The notes under the pieces were generated by a model, which was not told where the DNA came from, ran no database searches, and saw only the letters and a program-made list of their open reading frames with translations. DNA of 64,000 nt from Phallusia mammillata. Lineage: Eukaryota. The stretch lies in NCBI GenBank assembly GCA_965637545.1, contig OZ281494.1:8618001-8682000 (forward strand), in the 5' to 3' direction. This document shows positions 1,022 to 54,086 of this stretch, in pieces. Both the position numbers and the translations under genes were made by a program. The stretch's first letter is position 1. Each line of letters begins with the position of its first letter.

Positions 1022-1081
1022 TGAGTCATCACACTCAGAGGCTATAAAAAGATTTATATTGGACGACGCTTTAGTATAAAA
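1022..1081 (+). promoter_or_regulatory. Core promoter of the secreted-protein gene: AP-1 site plus two TATA boxes
   Basis: TGAGTCA at 1022-1028; TATAAAA at 1043-1049 and 1075-1081, 150-190 bp upstream of ATG 1234. Confidence 0.6.
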
Positions 1082-1233
1082 CAGCGAGCGAGTTGCTATG
1101 GACATTAGTTGAAACGAGAACAAATCCCGAGCACACTAGAATCATGTTACTGCTGGACACTATTTTGCTACTCTCACTTTGCCGATTCGGCACCTACAGT
1201 CAGCCAGCACGCAGGAGAAAATCAAATAGCGGA

Positions 1234-1917
1234 ATGGCATTACTGCTTTGTAAATTCGGACTGTTGTTATTAAGCTGCAGGTTGGTGCAGTCAGCCGCCC
1301 TACCCCAGGGCGCGCAAAGTCTTTCTTCAGCCGCCACTTCGGAGGCCTCCTCGATGGCGGGTCAGCGTATCAGAACCAGGTCACTGCTCAGGCGGATCGC
1401 CTGCGCTTTTGACGACTGCAGAGGCAAAACTCGTAGCGTGAGGGACATTACGTTCAACGCTATGCAGCAAGACGTTACTGAGCGGCTACACGTGGAGGTA
1501 GTCAACCAGGTCAATCTTCGCAGGCTGTGGCCTCGTCACTTGAGCAAAAACTCAAGAATGCGGCTTGCCAGGGGTCGTAAGAAGCGAGTGTGGACGGTCT
1601 GGAAACGCAACGAGACCGTTATGTTTGGTATTCCAGTTGCCAACACACCTATCAACAACATGTATCGCTTCATGTCTGTTGCCAAAAAGACCGAGAACAG
1701 GCCGGCGCGTCTGTACCTCACTGGAGCGATGCCTGCCCCTGAACTTCTTCTGCAATCCGACGACCGTGCTTTTGAGATCACGGGGACGAAACTCACAAAC
1801 CATCGCTATCTTTTACACAACGTGTCCGGCGCGTTCCTCGGCACCGATGATGGCCGTAGTGTACTTTTGACCGAGATGGGAGACGCAATCGACTGGGGCT
1901 TCGAGCTAGAGGACTGA
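1234..1917 (+). CDS. Intronless secreted protein (227 aa from ATG 1234; 257 aa from in-frame ATG 1144) with a putative beta-trefoil (IL-1/FGF-like) C-terminal domain
   Basis: Longest ORF in the window (1093..1917), GC-richer than its flanks. Signal peptide MALLLCKFGLLLLSCRLVQSA; basic convertase-type sites RSVR and RKKR; sequons NET and NVS; twelve short hydrophobic strands in three repeats from ~1489 to the C-terminus. TATA boxes upstream. Fold assignment is by eye only. Confidence 0.8.
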   Translation: MALLLCKFGLLLLSCRLVQSAALPQGAQSLSSAATSEASSMAGQRIRTRSLLRRIACAFDDCRGKTRSVRDITFNAMQQDVTERLHVEVVNQVNLRRLWPRHLSKNSRMRLARGRKKRVWTVWKRNETVMFGIPVANTPINNMYRFMSVAKKTENRPARLYLTGAMPAPELLLQSDDRAFEITGTKLTNHRYLLHNVSGAFLGTDDGRSVLLTEMGDAIDWGFELED

Positions 1918-2052
1918 GTACGATGTTTTATTTCTGTACGTATAGAACCGATTTGAGGTGCTAAAAGTTTCCGTCGTAGGTACCTCAAGTTCACTCGCCG
2001 ACTGATCGTGACCTTGAAGGGAGATTTTTATTTTTTATACAAATGCAAGCCT

Positions 2053-2110: not shown

Positions 2111-4686
2111 GCATTCGCGGCGTACGCGAGTACCCGCCCTTTTTGTTTTTGTTGTTGTTTATTTTTTTATTGACGTTTCCTTGCCCCCATGTTGTTCCCC
2201 TTCACAGATTTATCTGCTACAAAACGCCAATGAGCGATTATGTTTTACGGTCGGTTCCGGAATAGCCGCGTTGCACGCGATGGCTTTTCGCACGCGCTCT
2301 AAAAGCGTCGTTAAGGATTTTTAATTTGGCCCTGCTCGCACAGAAAATTAATTGCATCAGCAGGTCGGATCACAAGCTGGGATGCGCTTGCAGATCGTGA
2401 CTGGCGATTTCCCCTAATAGTTATCCCTTTGTCAGAAGCTTGCGTTGTCACGGCAGATAAGTGCCAACCGCCTTTTTACATTTGCCACAATACTACTGTT
2501 TCTGTATCTTGTCAGCACTGTGCGTATACTGTCTTAGGCGTGATAACTGAATGCAATGTGCCCCCGTTGCTCCCTATATGATATAGCTAACCTTACATCA
2601 CACGTTACTGCCCGCTGTGCTTTCAAATGCTGTTGTGTTGTTCACTTGCCATTTTTGTGTGTCGCGATAGAATCTATTTACCTTCTGTGCAGTGCGAGTA
2701 CACATGCCTTGTTGCCAAAGCTCTTTCAAGCACCGGGCTCGTTTTGTTTACTTAGCGCATATCCCTGTGTTCTGTGGCCGTTCGTTGTTTTTTGTAACAC
2801 CAAAGTATCTTGTTTTTTTTTACTTGTACTGTCAAAATGCACTTTTATGCTGTTAAACCTTTTTTTTACGACACGCTATACGAAATGGTTCAATAAGAGT
2901 TTATATATATTCCATACCTAAAAGGCTGTTGTTTGAGACTAGTAAGAAACAGACAGGTTATAAGGCAGGCTTTTGTGCGACCGCAGACAATCAGCTGACC
3001 GAAAAATTGACAAATTGCTCGCATGCGTAAGTTTCAGAATTCTTCGGAATGCTTCTATTTTTAACCGCAATTTGTGGGACTGTTGGTACAAAAATACTGG
3101 GCGGTATGGGGCGCAGAGGCAGGGATACCTTCCACGCCCCCAATTTAGAATTCGATTGCATTAAATTAGGCAAGTCAAGCTGAGATTCAAACATAAATTC
3201 AAACCGCAAAGTTGACGGTGATAACCGTGGGACATTGGCTAATCTGAAATGTGTGTTATCAAAACACAAACGTTTTGACAAACAAGTCTTTTATAGCGCC
3301 CTTAAATATGGTCAGTCCAATTTATTTGAAGTACTCAGTCTGCGTGTTAAACAGAAGAAAAAAATTGGCTGCGTGTAAAACAGAATAGACTGCTTGTAAA
3401 AACAGCAGGAAATACAATCCACATAATTAAACGTAACATTTGAAAATGACTTTGGCACGTTGCCCTCTCCCATTGCCTGGCATGAAAAGGGGGATTCCGG
3501 ACTACAACCTACGTCAGAATGACGTCAAAGTGTCGGTTCGCGGTCATAAAACATTCTGTGGGCAGCAATCAATCAACAGCCAATTCTTACTGATCAATTC
3601 TGCCGGTATTGAGCTATTACTTCGTTTCCCAATGTTTGTGTCACATAGTTGACTTAAAAAATAACCTAATTTTTCGGTTTCTATTCTCGGTGCAATTTTG
3701 TGACTCTATTTCAAATTGTTCTATTAACTAAGATACTGCGTCTTGGTCAATTTTGTCATTCATTTAGTCAAGCGAAATAAATTGAAACAAATGACAAAAA
3801 TCTATTGCAGGTTGCGCCATTAACAGCAAAGGAGAAGTAGAACAGTAACAGGCAGGCGAGAAAGGAAAGAATAGCAGTTACCAATTTTAGCGCTGCAGTT
3901 TTGCATGCAATCGATGTAGTCGCATTTTTCCAGACGACTGTCACATTTCGTTTTGTTTTTTTCACGCGATTTGCGTAAACGCGGCCGGGCGCGTTCCAAA
4001 ACAAATGAATTTGCAATACTGCGCAAAACGAGGAGAATTGTTTCCGGAAGCGCCTAATAATAATATGCGACAGACGCCTAGGCTTCATAAACAAAAACAA
4101 AAAGCGCTACCGTTGGCAAGTGCTACCAAGATTGGTTACGGAATGTCGAATGTAGGCAATAGGTCGCCGGATATTGTCAACACAGAATCACCTGGAACGA
4201 TTCCTGTTTGTGATTTTTGAGCCACAGTCAAACAACGCAGGGCAAATATGTAAACCCATGCGGGTGTTTTACCATTAGGCCGCCAATTTTATGGCTCGCA
4301 ACTACACCACAATAAACAAATAAATGGTCTGCGCTCGTTTAGTTAGTTTGTTGTTGAAACAAAAGTATGACACGTTTAAAAACGTCTTGGGTATGAAAAC
4401 AGGAAAGCCTAAATTTACAGTCAAAACTATGGGTGTTTTCAAATTGTTTCAAGTGACCAAAGCAATACGGCCATAGAGCTGATATGTTTAGCACTCATTC
4501 TATCGCAGACTTTCAATAATCGTTGTTATCAGTTTTCACTTATGATGACAACAGCGATTGTTAAAATGTTTGCAATATAATATATTCCTTGTACACAAGC
4601 ATTTCATGTATAGGTTACAATGTATTTTCTAGTTTAATGTATTTTCTTGTTAGGTACTTTTAAAGGCTGTCTGTAATGCTCTAATG

Positions 4687-4902
4687 CAGGGGTTTTTAAC
4701 CTGGGGTGCACGCACCCCCAAGGGGTGCGAGAACTGTTCCTAGGGGGTGCGGGGATGCTGAATCATTAAGGTTGGTTAGGTCTATTCTATTTAAGCAATT
4801 ACAGAAGGGGGAGCGAAAATTGGTTAGTGATATGAAAGGGGGTGCGAAAATTGGTTGGTGATTTGAAAGGGGTGAGCAAGGAAAAAAGGTTAAGAACCAC
4901 TG
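4687..4902. mobile_element. hAT (Charlie/Buster-type) MITE, 216 bp
   Basis: TIR CAGGGGTTTTTAACCT / CAGTGGTTCTTAACCT; perfect 8-bp TSD CTCTAATG (4679-4686, 4903-4910); short internal tandem repeat. Confidence 0.9.
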
Positions 4903-7900
4903 CTCTAATGTTCAAATGATATGTTGTTATAAAACGCAAATGTCCTAAAGCCTGCTGGCAGCCCACGTGTATCTCGCAGATAAGATTGCAAGCGTGCCGA
5001 TGCTTACAGACCAGTTGCAGTTGCAGCCGAGTTGTGCAATGACTCATAAACTATTTCGAATAATCCGATCCCGCCAACATGAGTTCGCCGGTCGGTTACA
5101 GATTCAGGCCTCACCCACGCATAGTAAGCCTTACATTTATGAATCGAACTTCTCACATAGGCCAATTCAATGAATAAGCTTTTGATCCCAGGCATAACGT
5201 ATAAACGAATATTTCACTTCCAGCAGTTTTTATCATAAATAATCGACGTTTCGGCGTCCCATAAAAAACGCTTTCATCTCAGGGTAATGGTATCTTGCAA
5301 CGTCGATTATAACAATAACTGCTGAATGAACAATAATCGTTTATTCACACACAGACATTTTCATAGGCAAAGCGTATGTGCTGTTTGAAAGCAATAGCAA
5401 TTAAATGATTTGTGCAGTACGTTTTGCTGTAGGTTACACTAACAATGAGAAGATGGACAGGTTATGTATGGGCTATGTTTGAAGTTTGAAATTGTTGACG
5501 CAATGAACTTAATTTAATGGCTGCAAAGGTTTTGTGTTATTTGATTGGTTTTCAGGGTCTGACCGCTACACTTCCCACATACACGAATATTTGATTTGAA
5601 TTTAGTGAGAGATTTTTGGTCTAATAAACTTGCTTGACGTAGCTGCGACCGCTATCTACGTAAAAAGGGAGTAGATTTTTAGGACTTTGCAGCAATCTTT
5701 GCAATTTATTGCCCGTACCCCGCCAACAGTTCACCAAGGTTTAAGCAAATCAAAATAACGGAACACAAGAAAGCTTCCAAAAAGACGCCATTAAAAAGGT
5801 GATCCTCTATCTCCATATAGTCGATTTGGGCAAAAAGGTAATTCGTTCATAAAGTGCCAAATCGACCAGCAGCCATCGCTTTTTGGTAGCAGATAAAACA
5901 TCTTGCTCATTACATGAAATAGTGGATAAATTTTGACATGTGCAAGCTAATTTGTAAAATTAAATAAAACTATTTTAGTTCTGTAAGTAAAGTTTGGAAC
6001 ATTCAGGTGACAGTTATAAAGGTTAATTACTCTAAACCTTTAGGCTTTTACTTGACCAGGGAATCCGAAAACGAAACAAGATTTGAAAGTGAGGTGTTCG
6101 TGTTGAAGTCGTAGACTAGAATATGTTTACATAAACTGATCTGTATGTAACTTACCTTTGAAAAAACGAATTCCAAAGTGAAACATACGAACAAAATGAA
6201 CCAACTTTGACTATTTACATTTCCCACTAAATTCTGACGGGCCGAATTAACATTTGTGGGTGGGGGGGTGCCTTCTCTCCGATGTGTATTTCGGCCACAA
6301 ACGTGTAAGAGCGACACTGGCATGGTTTCGTCCAATTTAGTCTTCATTACGTCAACATATTCCGAGAAGACATACCTCCAACCAATGCAGTTTCGTCTTT
6401 ATATGACTATTATGCATTTGCGTCTTGCTTAATGATACGATTTGCATATGAGGCGATATTCAAAAACCTGTAGGCATTATTTGTCATTTTTTCGAATGGG
6501 ACAAACGCACAATACGAACTTTGATCCGCATGACGAAAAATAGTTGGTATTTGAAAGATCGGTTTCTGCGAACGCGGCGATTTGAAATAGTTGAACTTTG
6601 GGTTAATGAATTAAAATGGCAGAATGAGTTATTAATTTCCCTGTTTGCTGAGCTGTTACTTTTTTGTGGCTTTTTTGAAGTTTTTTTGTGTTTTTTCGTG
6701 GTTTTTGTTGGTATAACAGCTTGTTTAACGAAAATTCTAATCCGATTGATTTTTTTAGCGGCAATAAAGAAGTCTTGGTTTAACAGTTTAAAGATATTTT
6801 CGAAATCTAGGACGTTTGACACAAAAATTTTCGTGTTTTGATGTTTGTAATTCCCGTTGTGGGTACTTTTATTTTGAATACGTTCTGTTTCAGTTTCCCG
6901 ATTATCCTTTTTTTTCAAAACATGATGGCATTACACAATCGAAACGGAAATAGTTCGCAATTTCACAGTTTTCGTTAAGCAAGAGCGGTCGATTTCAATC
7001 CGACTCACTGACAAATGTCATCTTACGTTCCTTAGCCCCAAGTGCATATGAAAGATCACATTTAAACTCGCCGCGCAGTTATCAAAATGTCAAAGATCCC
7101 GAAGAAAAAATATCAAACTCAGTTTCCAAACGTCTGCGTCAAATCAATACGATATGAATTATACGTAAATTCAATAATTCTTGAAAATTTATGATGTACG
7201 TAAAACTACGTGATAAATAACGTTTGGTTGACTGCGTGCTGCAGCGACGTCTTATGCGTGAGCACTGACCTATGAAACGTCGAAAACCGTAGGGACGGCT
7301 TGAGCTGACATTATGTGGCGTGGTAATTCATTCCGAATTTGTTTCTGATTACAGAAATGCATTAAACAGGAATCAAAGGCCGGTCACTGTCCAAGATACG
7401 ATCTCAATTTTACGGTTAGATATCACGAAGCATGGATTAGTATTTGCAAATGCTGTTCCCTAAGAGCTTATACGGCAACGTTATTTAAGACGAGAAACAG
7501 TAAGATATCATTGCTGTGCTTTTATTTTCTGGTGTAAAAAAATCGTCAGCTGTTCAAAAATACATCTGTTATTATTTCCATTTTTGTCTTGAACCGACTG
7601 AATTGTCAATAACGTACACATAATCGCAAAACACACAAATAAATTTAACGTAAACACACTAGGCCTACCTGATGAATTTTGAATAAGAAAACACCCGAAA
7701 TTGAAATTTTGATACCACGTTTAATTATGGACACCTATAGAAAAAACAATCCAACAGTTGCTTAAGCACCATGTACTTTTTACTATTTAACAACATATTT
7801 GGTTGCAATATGTAGATCGTGTTAGATTTGCACAAGGTAGTTTCTCAGTAACAAGGTGAAAATTTAGTAACAAACAACCTGAAAAGGTGCGTGCGCGGAA

Positions 7901-26942: not shown

Positions 26943-27513
26943 TCATTTTGCATCGTAACTGCACAGTGTCACATTTACCAATTTGTCTTTTAACTCTTTC
27001 CACTCTTTCCACATAAAACCTCGTATGTCTCGCGAAGTTTGACCTCTGTATCCCTTCCAATGGGTCGCGACGTGACCACTAGGCTCAAGAACCATGTCCG
27101 TGGGCATGCCCAGTTTTTCACGCAGCACCCCGGTGATCCATACGTCATCCATGCGCAGGGGTTCGTAGCGACGCGAAAGGTCCCATAGTTGGCGCGCGAC
27201 CCGCACAGACGTGGTGTACATGCCTCCGAGACAGAACTTCGGCCATTTAGCCCATTTGTACTCCTCGTTCGAAATGTAATATTTGCTATTGTTATGGCGT
27301 TCGGGTTTGGCGCCTGACCATTCCTTATACATACAAGCGATCGGAAATTCCGGCCAGCCAACCCTCTCTACTCTAGCGACCAAATACTTCAGTGCCGCTG
27401 TCATGGCAACCAGGTCGACCATGACGTCATCATCGGCACTCGAGTAGAATACGTTATCTGGAAGATTGTCAGACGCCCAGCTCATCCCGGCTAATGATTT
27501 CAGCGCAATGTTT
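26943..27513 (-). CDS. GT31 beta-1,3-glycosyltransferase paralogue A, exon 4 (catalytic C-terminal half)
   Basis: NIALKSLAGMSWA, SADDD (DxD motif), WPKFCLGGMY, RMDDVWITGVL; acceptor ttgcag at 27514; TGA at 26943-26945; Galactosyl_T family motifs. Confidence 0.93.
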
Positions 27514-27939
27514 CTGCAAGCAATTTTGTTTTGAATGATATTCTCTCGCAAAATCACGTGACCAGAAAACCGCAAAATATGTAACAACTGGGTGAAATAC
27601 AACCACTGCAGACAATTTATTCCATATAAGTCATCTATTAACCAGCACACAATTTCTACATAACTACGTGCTACCCTGACCAAAAATACCATATTAAATA
27701 TACACTGCGTATTATTACTAAAGCAATTCTAACATATGTATTTGAATTTTTATGCGGCCCTATCAAAAACCCACTTTCACATCCATTTTACGTTGAAATT
27801 GTTGACACAGACTAGAAAGTCAACATGCTATCATATAGCACATACACATACAGGTATTTTGATGTTTAAGACCTACTGGCTAACTCGAGTGAAACGTAAA
27901 AGTGCTTAAATCTTTCAAAACGGCAAAATTGGGACTTGC

Positions 27940-36799: not shown

Positions 36800-37364
36800 T
36801 CAACAAGTACAAACGGTTTTGTTTTCAGCGAGCGCAAGAAGTTTCGTCCACTCATCTTGCATCATGGTCCCTTGTGAAGTCAAATCCGCCTTTACTTTAA
36901 AGCCGAGGTAATGGTGGGCCACAGGGTCACTCAACAAGGTGACAAAATCGGCTGGAACACCGAGTTTTTTGCGTAAAATCCCAGTGATCCAAACGTCGTC
37001 GACCCGCATAGGCCGATGAAGTTGTGAAATCTCCCAAAGATCTCGCACCATGGCTAGAGAGGTGACATACATACCGCCCATGCAGAACTTAGGGTATTCA
37101 GGCCACCTGTACTCCTCCATTGAAATATACCACTTGCTGATCTTGTCACGAAAAGGTTTAGCCTTGTCTCGTCCGTCAAACATGCATATGATAGGAAAGA
37201 TGTTCGTTCCGTTTTTGACCATGAAGTCTCGATATGAATCAATTGTCTCCTGCATCTTGGCAATATTAACTAGGAAGTCGTCGTCGGCTGATGCGTAGTA
37301 ATAATTTCTGGGCAAATTTTCAACGGCCCAACGCATTCCAATCAGAGTCTTAAATGCGATGTTT
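36800..37364 (-). CDS. GT31 paralogue B, last exon (catalytic C-terminal half)
   Basis: NIAFKTLIGMRWA, YASADDD, YPKFCMGGMY, RVDDVWITGIL; acceptor tttacag at 37365; TGA at 36800. Confidence 0.93.
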
Positions 37365-53437: not shown

Positions 53438-54086
53438 TTAAGGCCAGCCCCTTCGCAATGTTGCACTTTCACGTTTTGTTTTTTGTTTCTTTTTAGTCCT
53501 TGTTCTGCGTGCCTGTATCTCGGAGAGATAAACGAAAGGTCGCACGCACATCGATTTGTGTCTAAACAGCTTGTACATTTCAATCCACTGGCTGCGCATG
53601 TACATGCGCTGTCCGTAAAATCGGGTGTTTTTATAATTGTCCAAGTGTTTGGCGATTGTGTTCGATGGCTTAACCAGCATAGAGGGCGACAGGCCAATTT
53701 CCTCTCGTAGAATGCCTGTGATCCAGACATCGTCTACTCTCATTGGTGATCGAAACTGAGCGATTTCCCACAGCGTTTGCACAAGGCGCACACGCATGGC
53801 GTACATGCCACCAAGGCAGAACTTTGGATAAGCAGATTTGCTGAACTCTTGTTTGCTAATGTACCACTTGCTTGAGGGGTCGCGGAAGGGCGCAGCGTTT
53901 TCATACATTCCGAAGCCGCAGATAATTGGGAATGGGTCGGTTCCATTGGTCACATATCCATCGATTAAATCTTCGAGTTCTCCAATGTTTAACATGAAAT
54001 CATCGTCGACAGAAGCGTAGAAAAAATCGTCTGGTAGATTTTCGGATGCCCATCGCATACCCATAAGGGTTTTGAAACCAATATTC
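53438..54086 (-). CDS. GT31 paralogue C, exon 4 (catalytic C-terminal half plus basic tail)
   Basis: NIGFKTLMGMRWA, YASVDDD, YPKFCLGGMY, RVDDVWITGIL; acceptor tttatgcag at 54087; TAA at 53438. Confidence 0.93.

Follow-up and report, generated by a model that had tools for sequence, protein, structure and literature searches.

An intronless gene of Phallusia mammillata from an undescribed ascidian family encodes a predicted beta-trefoil with features of a secreted pro-protein

Introduction

The 2026 survey that reported IL-1anc homologues across Eumetazoa turned up no candidate in three tunicate genomes (PMC13736523). Their traits comprise an (F/L)ES motif, a PDZ domain (lacking in a minority), a trefoil encoded over 3–5 exons with conserved intron phases, and IL-1R-like linkage, and the invertebrate proteins escape BLAST and HMMER (PMC13736523). 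No living group is more closely related to vertebrates than the tunicates, yet they have so far yielded no IL-1-type ligand. Here we analysed a window of 64,000 nucleotides (the whole stretch of DNA under study) from the tunicate Phallusia mammillata, G000:C1:8,618,001–8,682,000 of a 240-Mb assembly, and in particular a gene at 1234–1917 on its forward strand. The initial annotation, made from the letters of the window, had described this gene as an intronless secreted beta-trefoil protein in an apparently invertebrate genome and had proposed it as potentially an IL-1-like cytokine. The genome is indeed that of an invertebrate, a tunicate, and the initial premise of a restriction of IL-1 ligands to vertebrates no longer holds, since IL-1anc occurs across Eumetazoa (PMC13736523).

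We found an intact open reading frame (ORF) under purifying selection that belongs to a fast-evolving ascidian orphan family, is predicted to fold as a beta-trefoil and is accompanied by conserved non-coding blocks; nothing tested shows IL-1 or FGF cytokine identity. The fold is already known. What is new is the link of the gene to a family undescribed in Pfam and in the literature searched, its putative secretory adaptations, a probable correction of its start codon and the conserved elements of its untranslated regions. Positions are those of the window, and residues are counted from M1 = 1234, the numbering of the initial annotation.

Gene structure and selection

The frame at 1234–1917 (+) is open over 227 codons plus a stop, and the G+C content around it is 48%, compared with ~38% in the remaining window. 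A 3,978-bp Logan contig (L003) holds an orthologue with 48–55% identity (P0001), and a JGI contig (L022) holds a second one with 35–37% identity; the main frame is open in all three species, and several assemblies hold intact relatives. Comparison of the window with L003 revealed nonsynonymous and synonymous differences of pN 0.28 and pS 0.71, respectively, and an omega of about 0.16 or less, a value that is only approximate because pS is saturated. The stretch 1234–1917 is a real gene under purifying selection. The lack of introns noted at the outset was confirmed, the whole protein being a single ORF in the window and in L003, L022, L023, L024 and L025.

The start at 1234, in contrast, is probably wrong, since an ATG further upstream is conserved in two further species, one of which has no Met at 1234. 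The stretch concerned is as follows:

1144–1233 (+): 30 further N-terminal codons in frame with 1234, uninterrupted in the window, L003 and L022, which differ by a 3-nt indel

The in-frame ATG at 1144 is kept in L003 and L022, and the leader of the L022 protein needs this upstream ATG because there is no Met at the position equivalent to 1234. This points to ATG 1144 as the probable true start and to a product of 257 aa.

An ascidian orphan family

An exhaustive phmmer search of 1.84 billion representatives returned 8 true family matches, the named ones from Phallusia and Clavelina, and none of the 8 carries a Pfam domain. P0008 is P. mammillata CAB3263056.1, an 'uncharacterized protein LOC100187199', and Clavelina lepadiformis CAK8693009.1 is a named family member; no publication was found on LOC100187199 or on run DRR090687. 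Similarity of the window protein to the Phallusia and Clavelina members is significant (phmmer E-values of 6e-16 to 2e-4, profile E-values down to 1e-61), and it extends to residues that are invariant in the family (W120, W123, F131, D176, R178, F180 and H195; alignment A6) and to an SLL...C...C motif common to all paralogues, which corresponds to the 'pro-region' of the window protein. A homologue search with the single sequence gave 1 match, and the same search with alignment A5 gave only two already known proteins. The initial suggestion of a lineage-specific, previously unrecognised family thus held, with members from ascidians only wherever the source is named.

Most family members are single-exon. 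Five paralogues lie at C1 18.07–18.12 Mb, and the only one with an intron, placed after WPR, is the two-exon gene at C1:18.081 Mb, 9.4 Mb away from the window gene, whose product reads the same as P0008 by eye. Unlike the window gene, the Phallusia paralogues have no leader (0 of the five), no furin-type site and no sequon. Three of the C1 paralogues begin with an acidic stretch and CCLCLLICPW, and relatives in other species begin MGQxxS or MGSSNT, which fits the N-myristoylation pattern; these Cys-cluster or Gly2 N-termini of the leaderless members look like lipid anchors. Leader-bearing members number five: the window gene, P0001, P0002 and two Clavelina genes. The furin-type site and an N-x-T are found in the window gene, P0001, P0002 and Clavelina P0005, whereas the second Clavelina gene lacks both. 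Tree analysis placed the window gene and P0001 as sisters (support 97/99) and allowed a single origin for the leader-bearing members, without resolving it.

In C. lepadiformis (GCA_961645235.1, L025) the two leader-bearing members lie 5 kb apart, at 146–985 and 6001–6630, and in the upstream one, as in the window gene, the hydrophobic core follows a long N-terminal extension. Another species holds three family members within 6 kb. More distant leaderless single-ORF proteins are encoded at G000:C1 17.553–17.567 Mb (L026, L027) and 18.08–18.11 Mb (L010 on the minus strand, L011, L012, L028); they carry the motifs YCWP, KWNF and HKxSGKYFG, match the family profile weakly (E-values of 1e-6 to 1e-4 in a small database) and may constitute a sister trefoil family in tandem arrays. 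A marginal family match with a DKRFF motif was also seen at G000:C8:3354380–3354547 (L006, ORF 1348–1794).

Outside the family phmmer returned one match only, the BspA-type leucine-rich-repeat protein P0007, which aligned to the leader region alone (residues 5–65) and which we treated as spurious. The absence of introns from the family and its bacterial language-model neighbours led us to consider horizontal transfer of a bacterial ricin-like domain; phmmer found no significant bacterial ricin-type or other beta-trefoil match, and we regard this origin as very improbable.

Predicted fold

AlphaFold run on the single sequence gave a predicted local distance difference test (pLDDT) of 33, and only the alignment of 13 family sequences (A6) gave a usable model, with a predicted template modelling score of 0.52 and block-mean pLDDT of 67–90 over residues 121–220. 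Strands were modelled at residues 83–88, 120–125, 128–134, 144–149, 159–163, 180–185, 190–195, 201–204 and 209–213, together with short bridges. Of the twelve strands read by eye in the initial annotation, 11 coincide with modelled strands, and RRLWP was not modelled as a strand. The model qualifies as a beta-trefoil, a class defined by a barrel of twelve strands capped by hairpins and by superposition on solved members across most of the domain, and structural comparison returned beta-trefoils as its sole matches. By this model the protein folds as a beta-trefoil, as had been proposed.

The comparison did not single out one class of trefoil. Structural Z-scores were about 10 for FGF12 and FGF18 in a wide search and, in a second comparison, 12.1 for a lectin and 11.3 for IL-1beta, with Mitsuba-1 and an Entamoeba lectin among the top matches; the tool treats Z differences below 1 as ties, and the top rows are therefore tied. 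Foldseek against PDB gave no match at E≤0.001, the best being the CWRC salivary trefoil of the mosquito Culex at 4.9e-3, and the structural neighbours in the ESM Atlas were ricin-type domains at a TM-score of 0.5. The 'three repeats' initially seen in the sequence were not recovered, as hhalign of the thirds against each other yielded probabilities of only 0.05–0.64%.

Secretory features

Along the predicted precursor the following features were mapped:

1234–1299 (+): putative hydrophobic leader M1–A22, with a signal-peptide core and a likely VQS-A type cleavage region, assigned from hydropathy
1300–1443 (+): pro-region L23–R70 with the conserved SLLRRIACAFDDC helix/Cys motif, ending in RSVR at 1432–1443
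1444–1914 (+): predicted mature chain D71–D227, 158 aa, 18.3 kDa, isoelectric point 10.0, no Cys
1471–1914 (+): predicted beta-trefoil domain (~residues 80–227) within the mature chain
1609–1617 (+): N-glycosylation sequon N126-E-T, directly after the invariant WxxW

The leader has an 11-residue Kyte-Doolittle mean of 2.1–2.2 with small residues at −3/−1 (VQS-A), is 82% identical in L003 and is placed in a helix at residues 2–20 by AlphaFold; in the long form it is preceded by RRRK, in line with the positive-inside rule. RSVR occupies residues 67–70, and relatives have RHTR, RQKR and VQRR at the same column (four members including the window protein). By motif and hydropathy reading, features of a classical secretory pro-protein are present and conserved within the leader-bearing branch. 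The SLLRRIACAFDDC motif of the pro-region is common to the N-termini of the leaderless paralogues. An N-x-T at the N126 column, with a variable middle residue, is present in 4 of the 5 leader-bearing members and in none of the 11 leaderless ones, and this distribution is the best indirect evidence that the trefoil would be exposed to the lumen of the endoplasmic reticulum (ER). As for the secreted pre-pro-protein described initially, its hydrophobic leader, VQS-A and RSVR (67–70) are present, whereas secretion and cleavage are predictions; judged from leader, furin-type site and sequon, the protein is probably secreted, glycosylated and cleaved by a convertase.

The hydrophobic segment might instead be an uncleaved anchor, leaving the trefoil tethered to the membrane and unreleased. 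Such a topology would resemble that of the paralogues, which may be tethered through the Gly2 (MGQxxS, MGSSNT) or Cys-cluster (CCLCLLIC) N-termini that they have instead of a leader and whose SLLxxxxCxxxxC is homologous to the pro-region motif; it would also suit the two hydrophobic stretches that follow ATG 1144. However, the positive charges N-terminal to the main hydrophobic segment predict an exoplasmic C-terminus, the cleavage region has the expected small residues (VQS-A, AQA-A, AHS-A), and a conserved sequon and a furin-type site would have a role only in the lumen of the secretory pathway. We therefore consider permanent anchoring quite improbable.

Non-coding elements

Conserved elements were found on both sides of the coding frame:

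1022–1028 (+): AP-1/TRE consensus TGAGTCA, 19 nt upstream of the TATA block, a spacing (−19) that L003 shares
1041–1053 (+): TATA box block GCTATAAAAAGAT, a 13-mer identical in the window, L003 and L022
1098–1112 (+): mini upstream ORF (uORF; ATG, 3 codons and TGA) in the 5' leader
1950–1991 (+): putative 3' stem-loop with a 13-bp stem, ~35 nt past the stop codon, the arms invariant and the loop different between the window and L003
2020–2112 (+): AU-rich block with ATTTA at 2053, 2081, 2100 and 2104 and the UUAUUUAUU nonamer at 2102–2110
2238–2440 (+): non-coding block ~75% identical to L003, single copy in the genome

The counterpart of the AP-1 site in L022 is TGACTCA at −131, and a function of this site is suggested by its motif. 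All three species have a uORF of 4–6 codons between the TATA box and the main ATG. The folding energy of the stem-loop was −15.5 kcal/mol (z −1.8) in the window and −16.9 kcal/mol (z −3.2) in L003, with no covariation between the two. All four ATTTA pentamers and the UUAUUUAUU nonamer fall within stretches aligned as identical to L003. The block at 2238–2440, which has no Rfam match, may be part of a long 3' untranslated region or a downstream regulatory element or enhancer; Rfam and tRNA scans of the flanks matched nothing. Because the non-coding blocks remain 72–81% identical between species while synonymous sites are saturated, they are under constraint, and the locus can be described as a compact intronless gene with untranslated regions more conserved than its synonymous sites. 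Taken together, the AP-1 and TATA motifs, the mini-uORF, the 3' hairpin and the AU-rich elements, all conserved, suggest a tightly controlled, probably inducible and short-lived mRNA.

Comparison with the IL-1 superfamily

A tunicate IL-1 would be of interest in itself, as it would close the only deuterostome gap in the 2026 IL-1anc survey and would be a candidate for the 'tunicate IL-1-like activity' that has reportedly been described since 1989. Every sequence, gene-structure and linkage test of IL-1 membership that we ran came out negative, with structural scores tied between trefoil classes, and the proposal of an IL-1-like cytokine is not supported. Pfam tests covered 13 family members and motif counts covered 16. 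Pfam IL1 (PF00340) matched none of the 13 at E≤10, sequence and profile searches of PDB gave no IL-1 chain at E≤10, and a genome scan with the same model gave one match of E 1.7 on another chromosome and none at the family loci. The by-eye alignment to IL-1beta offered initially is no better than chance, with a structure-based identity of 12–13% (16% for IL-1Ra); in structural alignments identity ranged from 4% to 17% for unrelated trefoils and from 10% to 16% for the IL-1 superfamily (IL-18, IL-1beta, IL-1Ra).

The traits of IL-1anc were likewise missing from this locus. The window protein lacks the (F/L)ES motif, as do 14 of the 15 other members, and the hairpin has an invariant His instead; no member has a Pfam match to PDZ; and the trefoil is encoded on one exon rather than on 3–5 with conserved introns. 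The search for Ig-TIR partners that had been suggested found six TIR loci, on C2, C3, C4 and C5, and thus none linked to the gene on C1, GCC2 and ESD not having been searched for. Over the 25 kb that follow the trefoil gene we found no ORF bearing a Pfam domain, the next genes being B3GalT paralogues. One paralogue in another species (L024, 2030–2524) reads H-LES-SKYL at the conserved hairpin; no other member has LES, and its presence here is probably due to chance.

Could the protein nevertheless be a highly diverged IL-1 superfamily member, a tunicate IL-1 that the 2026 survey missed and that acts via an Ig-TIR receptor? Its domain is IL-1-sized (~148 aa) and has no disulfides, the majority of its paralogues are leaderless as IL-1s are, its long leader has a parallel in the likewise unusually long signal peptide of lamprey IL-1.1, and BLAST and HMMER miss the IL-1anc proteins of invertebrates, none of which was found in tunicates (PMC13736523). 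Against this stand the null results with Pfam IL1 in the members and at their genomic loci, the lack of PDZ, of a split trefoil and of a TIR locus on C1, and structural scores that are tied, with a lectin reaching Z 12.1. In 15 of 16 members (F/L)ES is missing from the hairpin, whose pattern h-H-x-x-S/T-G-x-Y/F-L is that of MIR, fascin and ricin-type trefoils, and no IL-1 cluster occurred among the 100 nearest language-model neighbours shown, with ricin-type families kept or removed. We consider this identity improbable, and equally improbable the idea that the family is a fast-evolved tunicate descendant of the IL-1 superfamily in which this gene is the secreted member. The ascidian-restricted family is a concrete and cheap candidate for the tunicate IL-1 gap, with the cytokine claim itself unsupported.

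Comparison with FGFs, lectins and other trefoils

No Pfam model matched the window protein at E≤10, and the best sub-threshold matches among the 13 members were to Fascin (0.088), FGF (0.12, in one paralogue only) and an ulvan-lyase trefoil (0.18). Nor did sequence and profile searches of PDB give anything significant; the best matches, to the MIR-type hairpin of RyR2 (E 0.048) and to Mitsuba-1 (0.08), both run through the motif h-H-x-x-S/T-G-K-Y-L. This hairpin motif is what the family has in common with ricin-B-like, fascin/FRG1 and MIR trefoils, to none of which a match was significant. Moreover, the fascin, FRG1 and RyR domains are cytosolic, whereas the window protein has a leader and no three-fold repeat.

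With secreted FGFs, which are ligands, the protein shares the trefoil fold and a basic surface segment. A divergent ascidian FGF such as FGF-L would accord with this fold, with the basic mature N-terminus (RGRKKR) and with the one paralogue matching Pfam FGF at E 0.12. However, Pfam FGF (PF00167) finds six multi-exon loci in the genome and none at the family loci, and the window protein, from an intronless gene, has no FGF match at E≤10. The FGF resemblance noted initially therefore found no support, canonical split FGF loci lying elsewhere, and the chance that the protein is an FGF-family growth factor is next to negligible.

A secreted ricin-like carbohydrate-binding lectin, serving in defence or in the tunic and not in signalling, deserves more weight. 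The nearest language-model neighbours were RicinB_lectin_2, CCL2-like, I66 and CDtoxinA clusters (0.91–0.94), and after removal of the ricin-like clusters fascin/FRG1 clusters (0.91), with FGF as a minor label only; at a feature overlap of 121–135 of 256, such scores are leads only according to the tool. Mitsuba-1 and the Entamoeba lectin ranked among the top structural matches, the ESM Atlas neighbours were ricin-type, and Mitsuba-1 was also the best match of a PDB profile search, at its non-significant E of 0.08. On the other hand, there was no Pfam match to Ricin_B_lectin or RicinB_lectin_2, no three-fold repeat or QxW pattern (hhalign between lobes under 1%), and no repetition of the invariant residues across the three lobes; the remaining family is leaderless, and its basic leaderless forms look intracellular. 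The lack of an internal sequence repeat argues against a three-site ricin-type lectin in particular, and we judge a lectin role unlikely.

Proposed product and function

We favour as probable, with fairly good confidence, that the locus encodes a real secreted trefoil of the orphan family. Most likely, the intronless, TATA-driven gene would give a pre-pro-protein of 257 aa from ATG 1144, whose hydrophobic leader, following a basic cluster, would take the chain into the ER. There N126 in the trefoil would be glycosylated, a furin-type convertase would cut after RSVR70, and a basic, cysteine-free beta-trefoil domain of ~18 kDa would be released extracellularly. The secreted branch would have derived from leaderless, probably membrane-associated trefoils, one member having gained a leader along with convertase and glycan sites and strongly conserved untranslated regions. 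Even if it is not an IL-1, the gene would illustrate the conversion of an intracellular trefoil without a leader, probably held by a lipid anchor, into a secreted pro-protein.

Whether the mature trefoil is an extracellular binding or signalling ligand rather than a three-site lectin is a question on which we lean, tentatively and at somewhat less than even confidence, towards the ligand. We do so because of the pro-protein architecture, the conserved uORF, AU-rich, 3' hairpin and AP-1/TATA elements that would befit an inducible mRNA, the apparently single-copy state of the secreted form in Phallusia and the lack of a three-fold binding motif.

Several observations weigh against this proposal. 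The first third of the trefoil (residues 80–119) was modelled with pLDDT under 60. The leader includes K7 and R16 and a second hydrophobic stretch lies upstream of it, which makes the topology less certain, and RSVR is a minimal furin motif only. The exact window protein is absent from the public protein collection searched, there is no canonical poly(A) signal before 3160, and none of the 13 probable RNA runs of the species in the run index contains words of the stretch. A ligand function, moreover, is argued by analogy alone. DNA runs containing the stretch are listed in the run index. Four small runs carry Tn5 adapter ends, and their contigs align only to 779–1924 and to a repeat at 4690–4900; because the runs were picked for holding the gene, these Tn5-type contigs say nothing on expression or chromatin.

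Other features of the window

The stretch at 4690–4900 reached a depth of up to ~800x, with many small variant contigs, in the four Tn5-type libraries; it had no tRNA or Rfam family match and is probably a multi-copy repeat. Further downstream, three ORFs match Pfam Galactosyl_T (PF01762) with E-values of 1e-18 to 1e-20 and look like a tandem array of beta-1,3-galactosyltransferase paralogues:

26943–27692 (−): ORF matching Galactosyl_T
36800–37336 (−): ORF matching Galactosyl_T
53438–54064 (−): ORF matching Galactosyl_T
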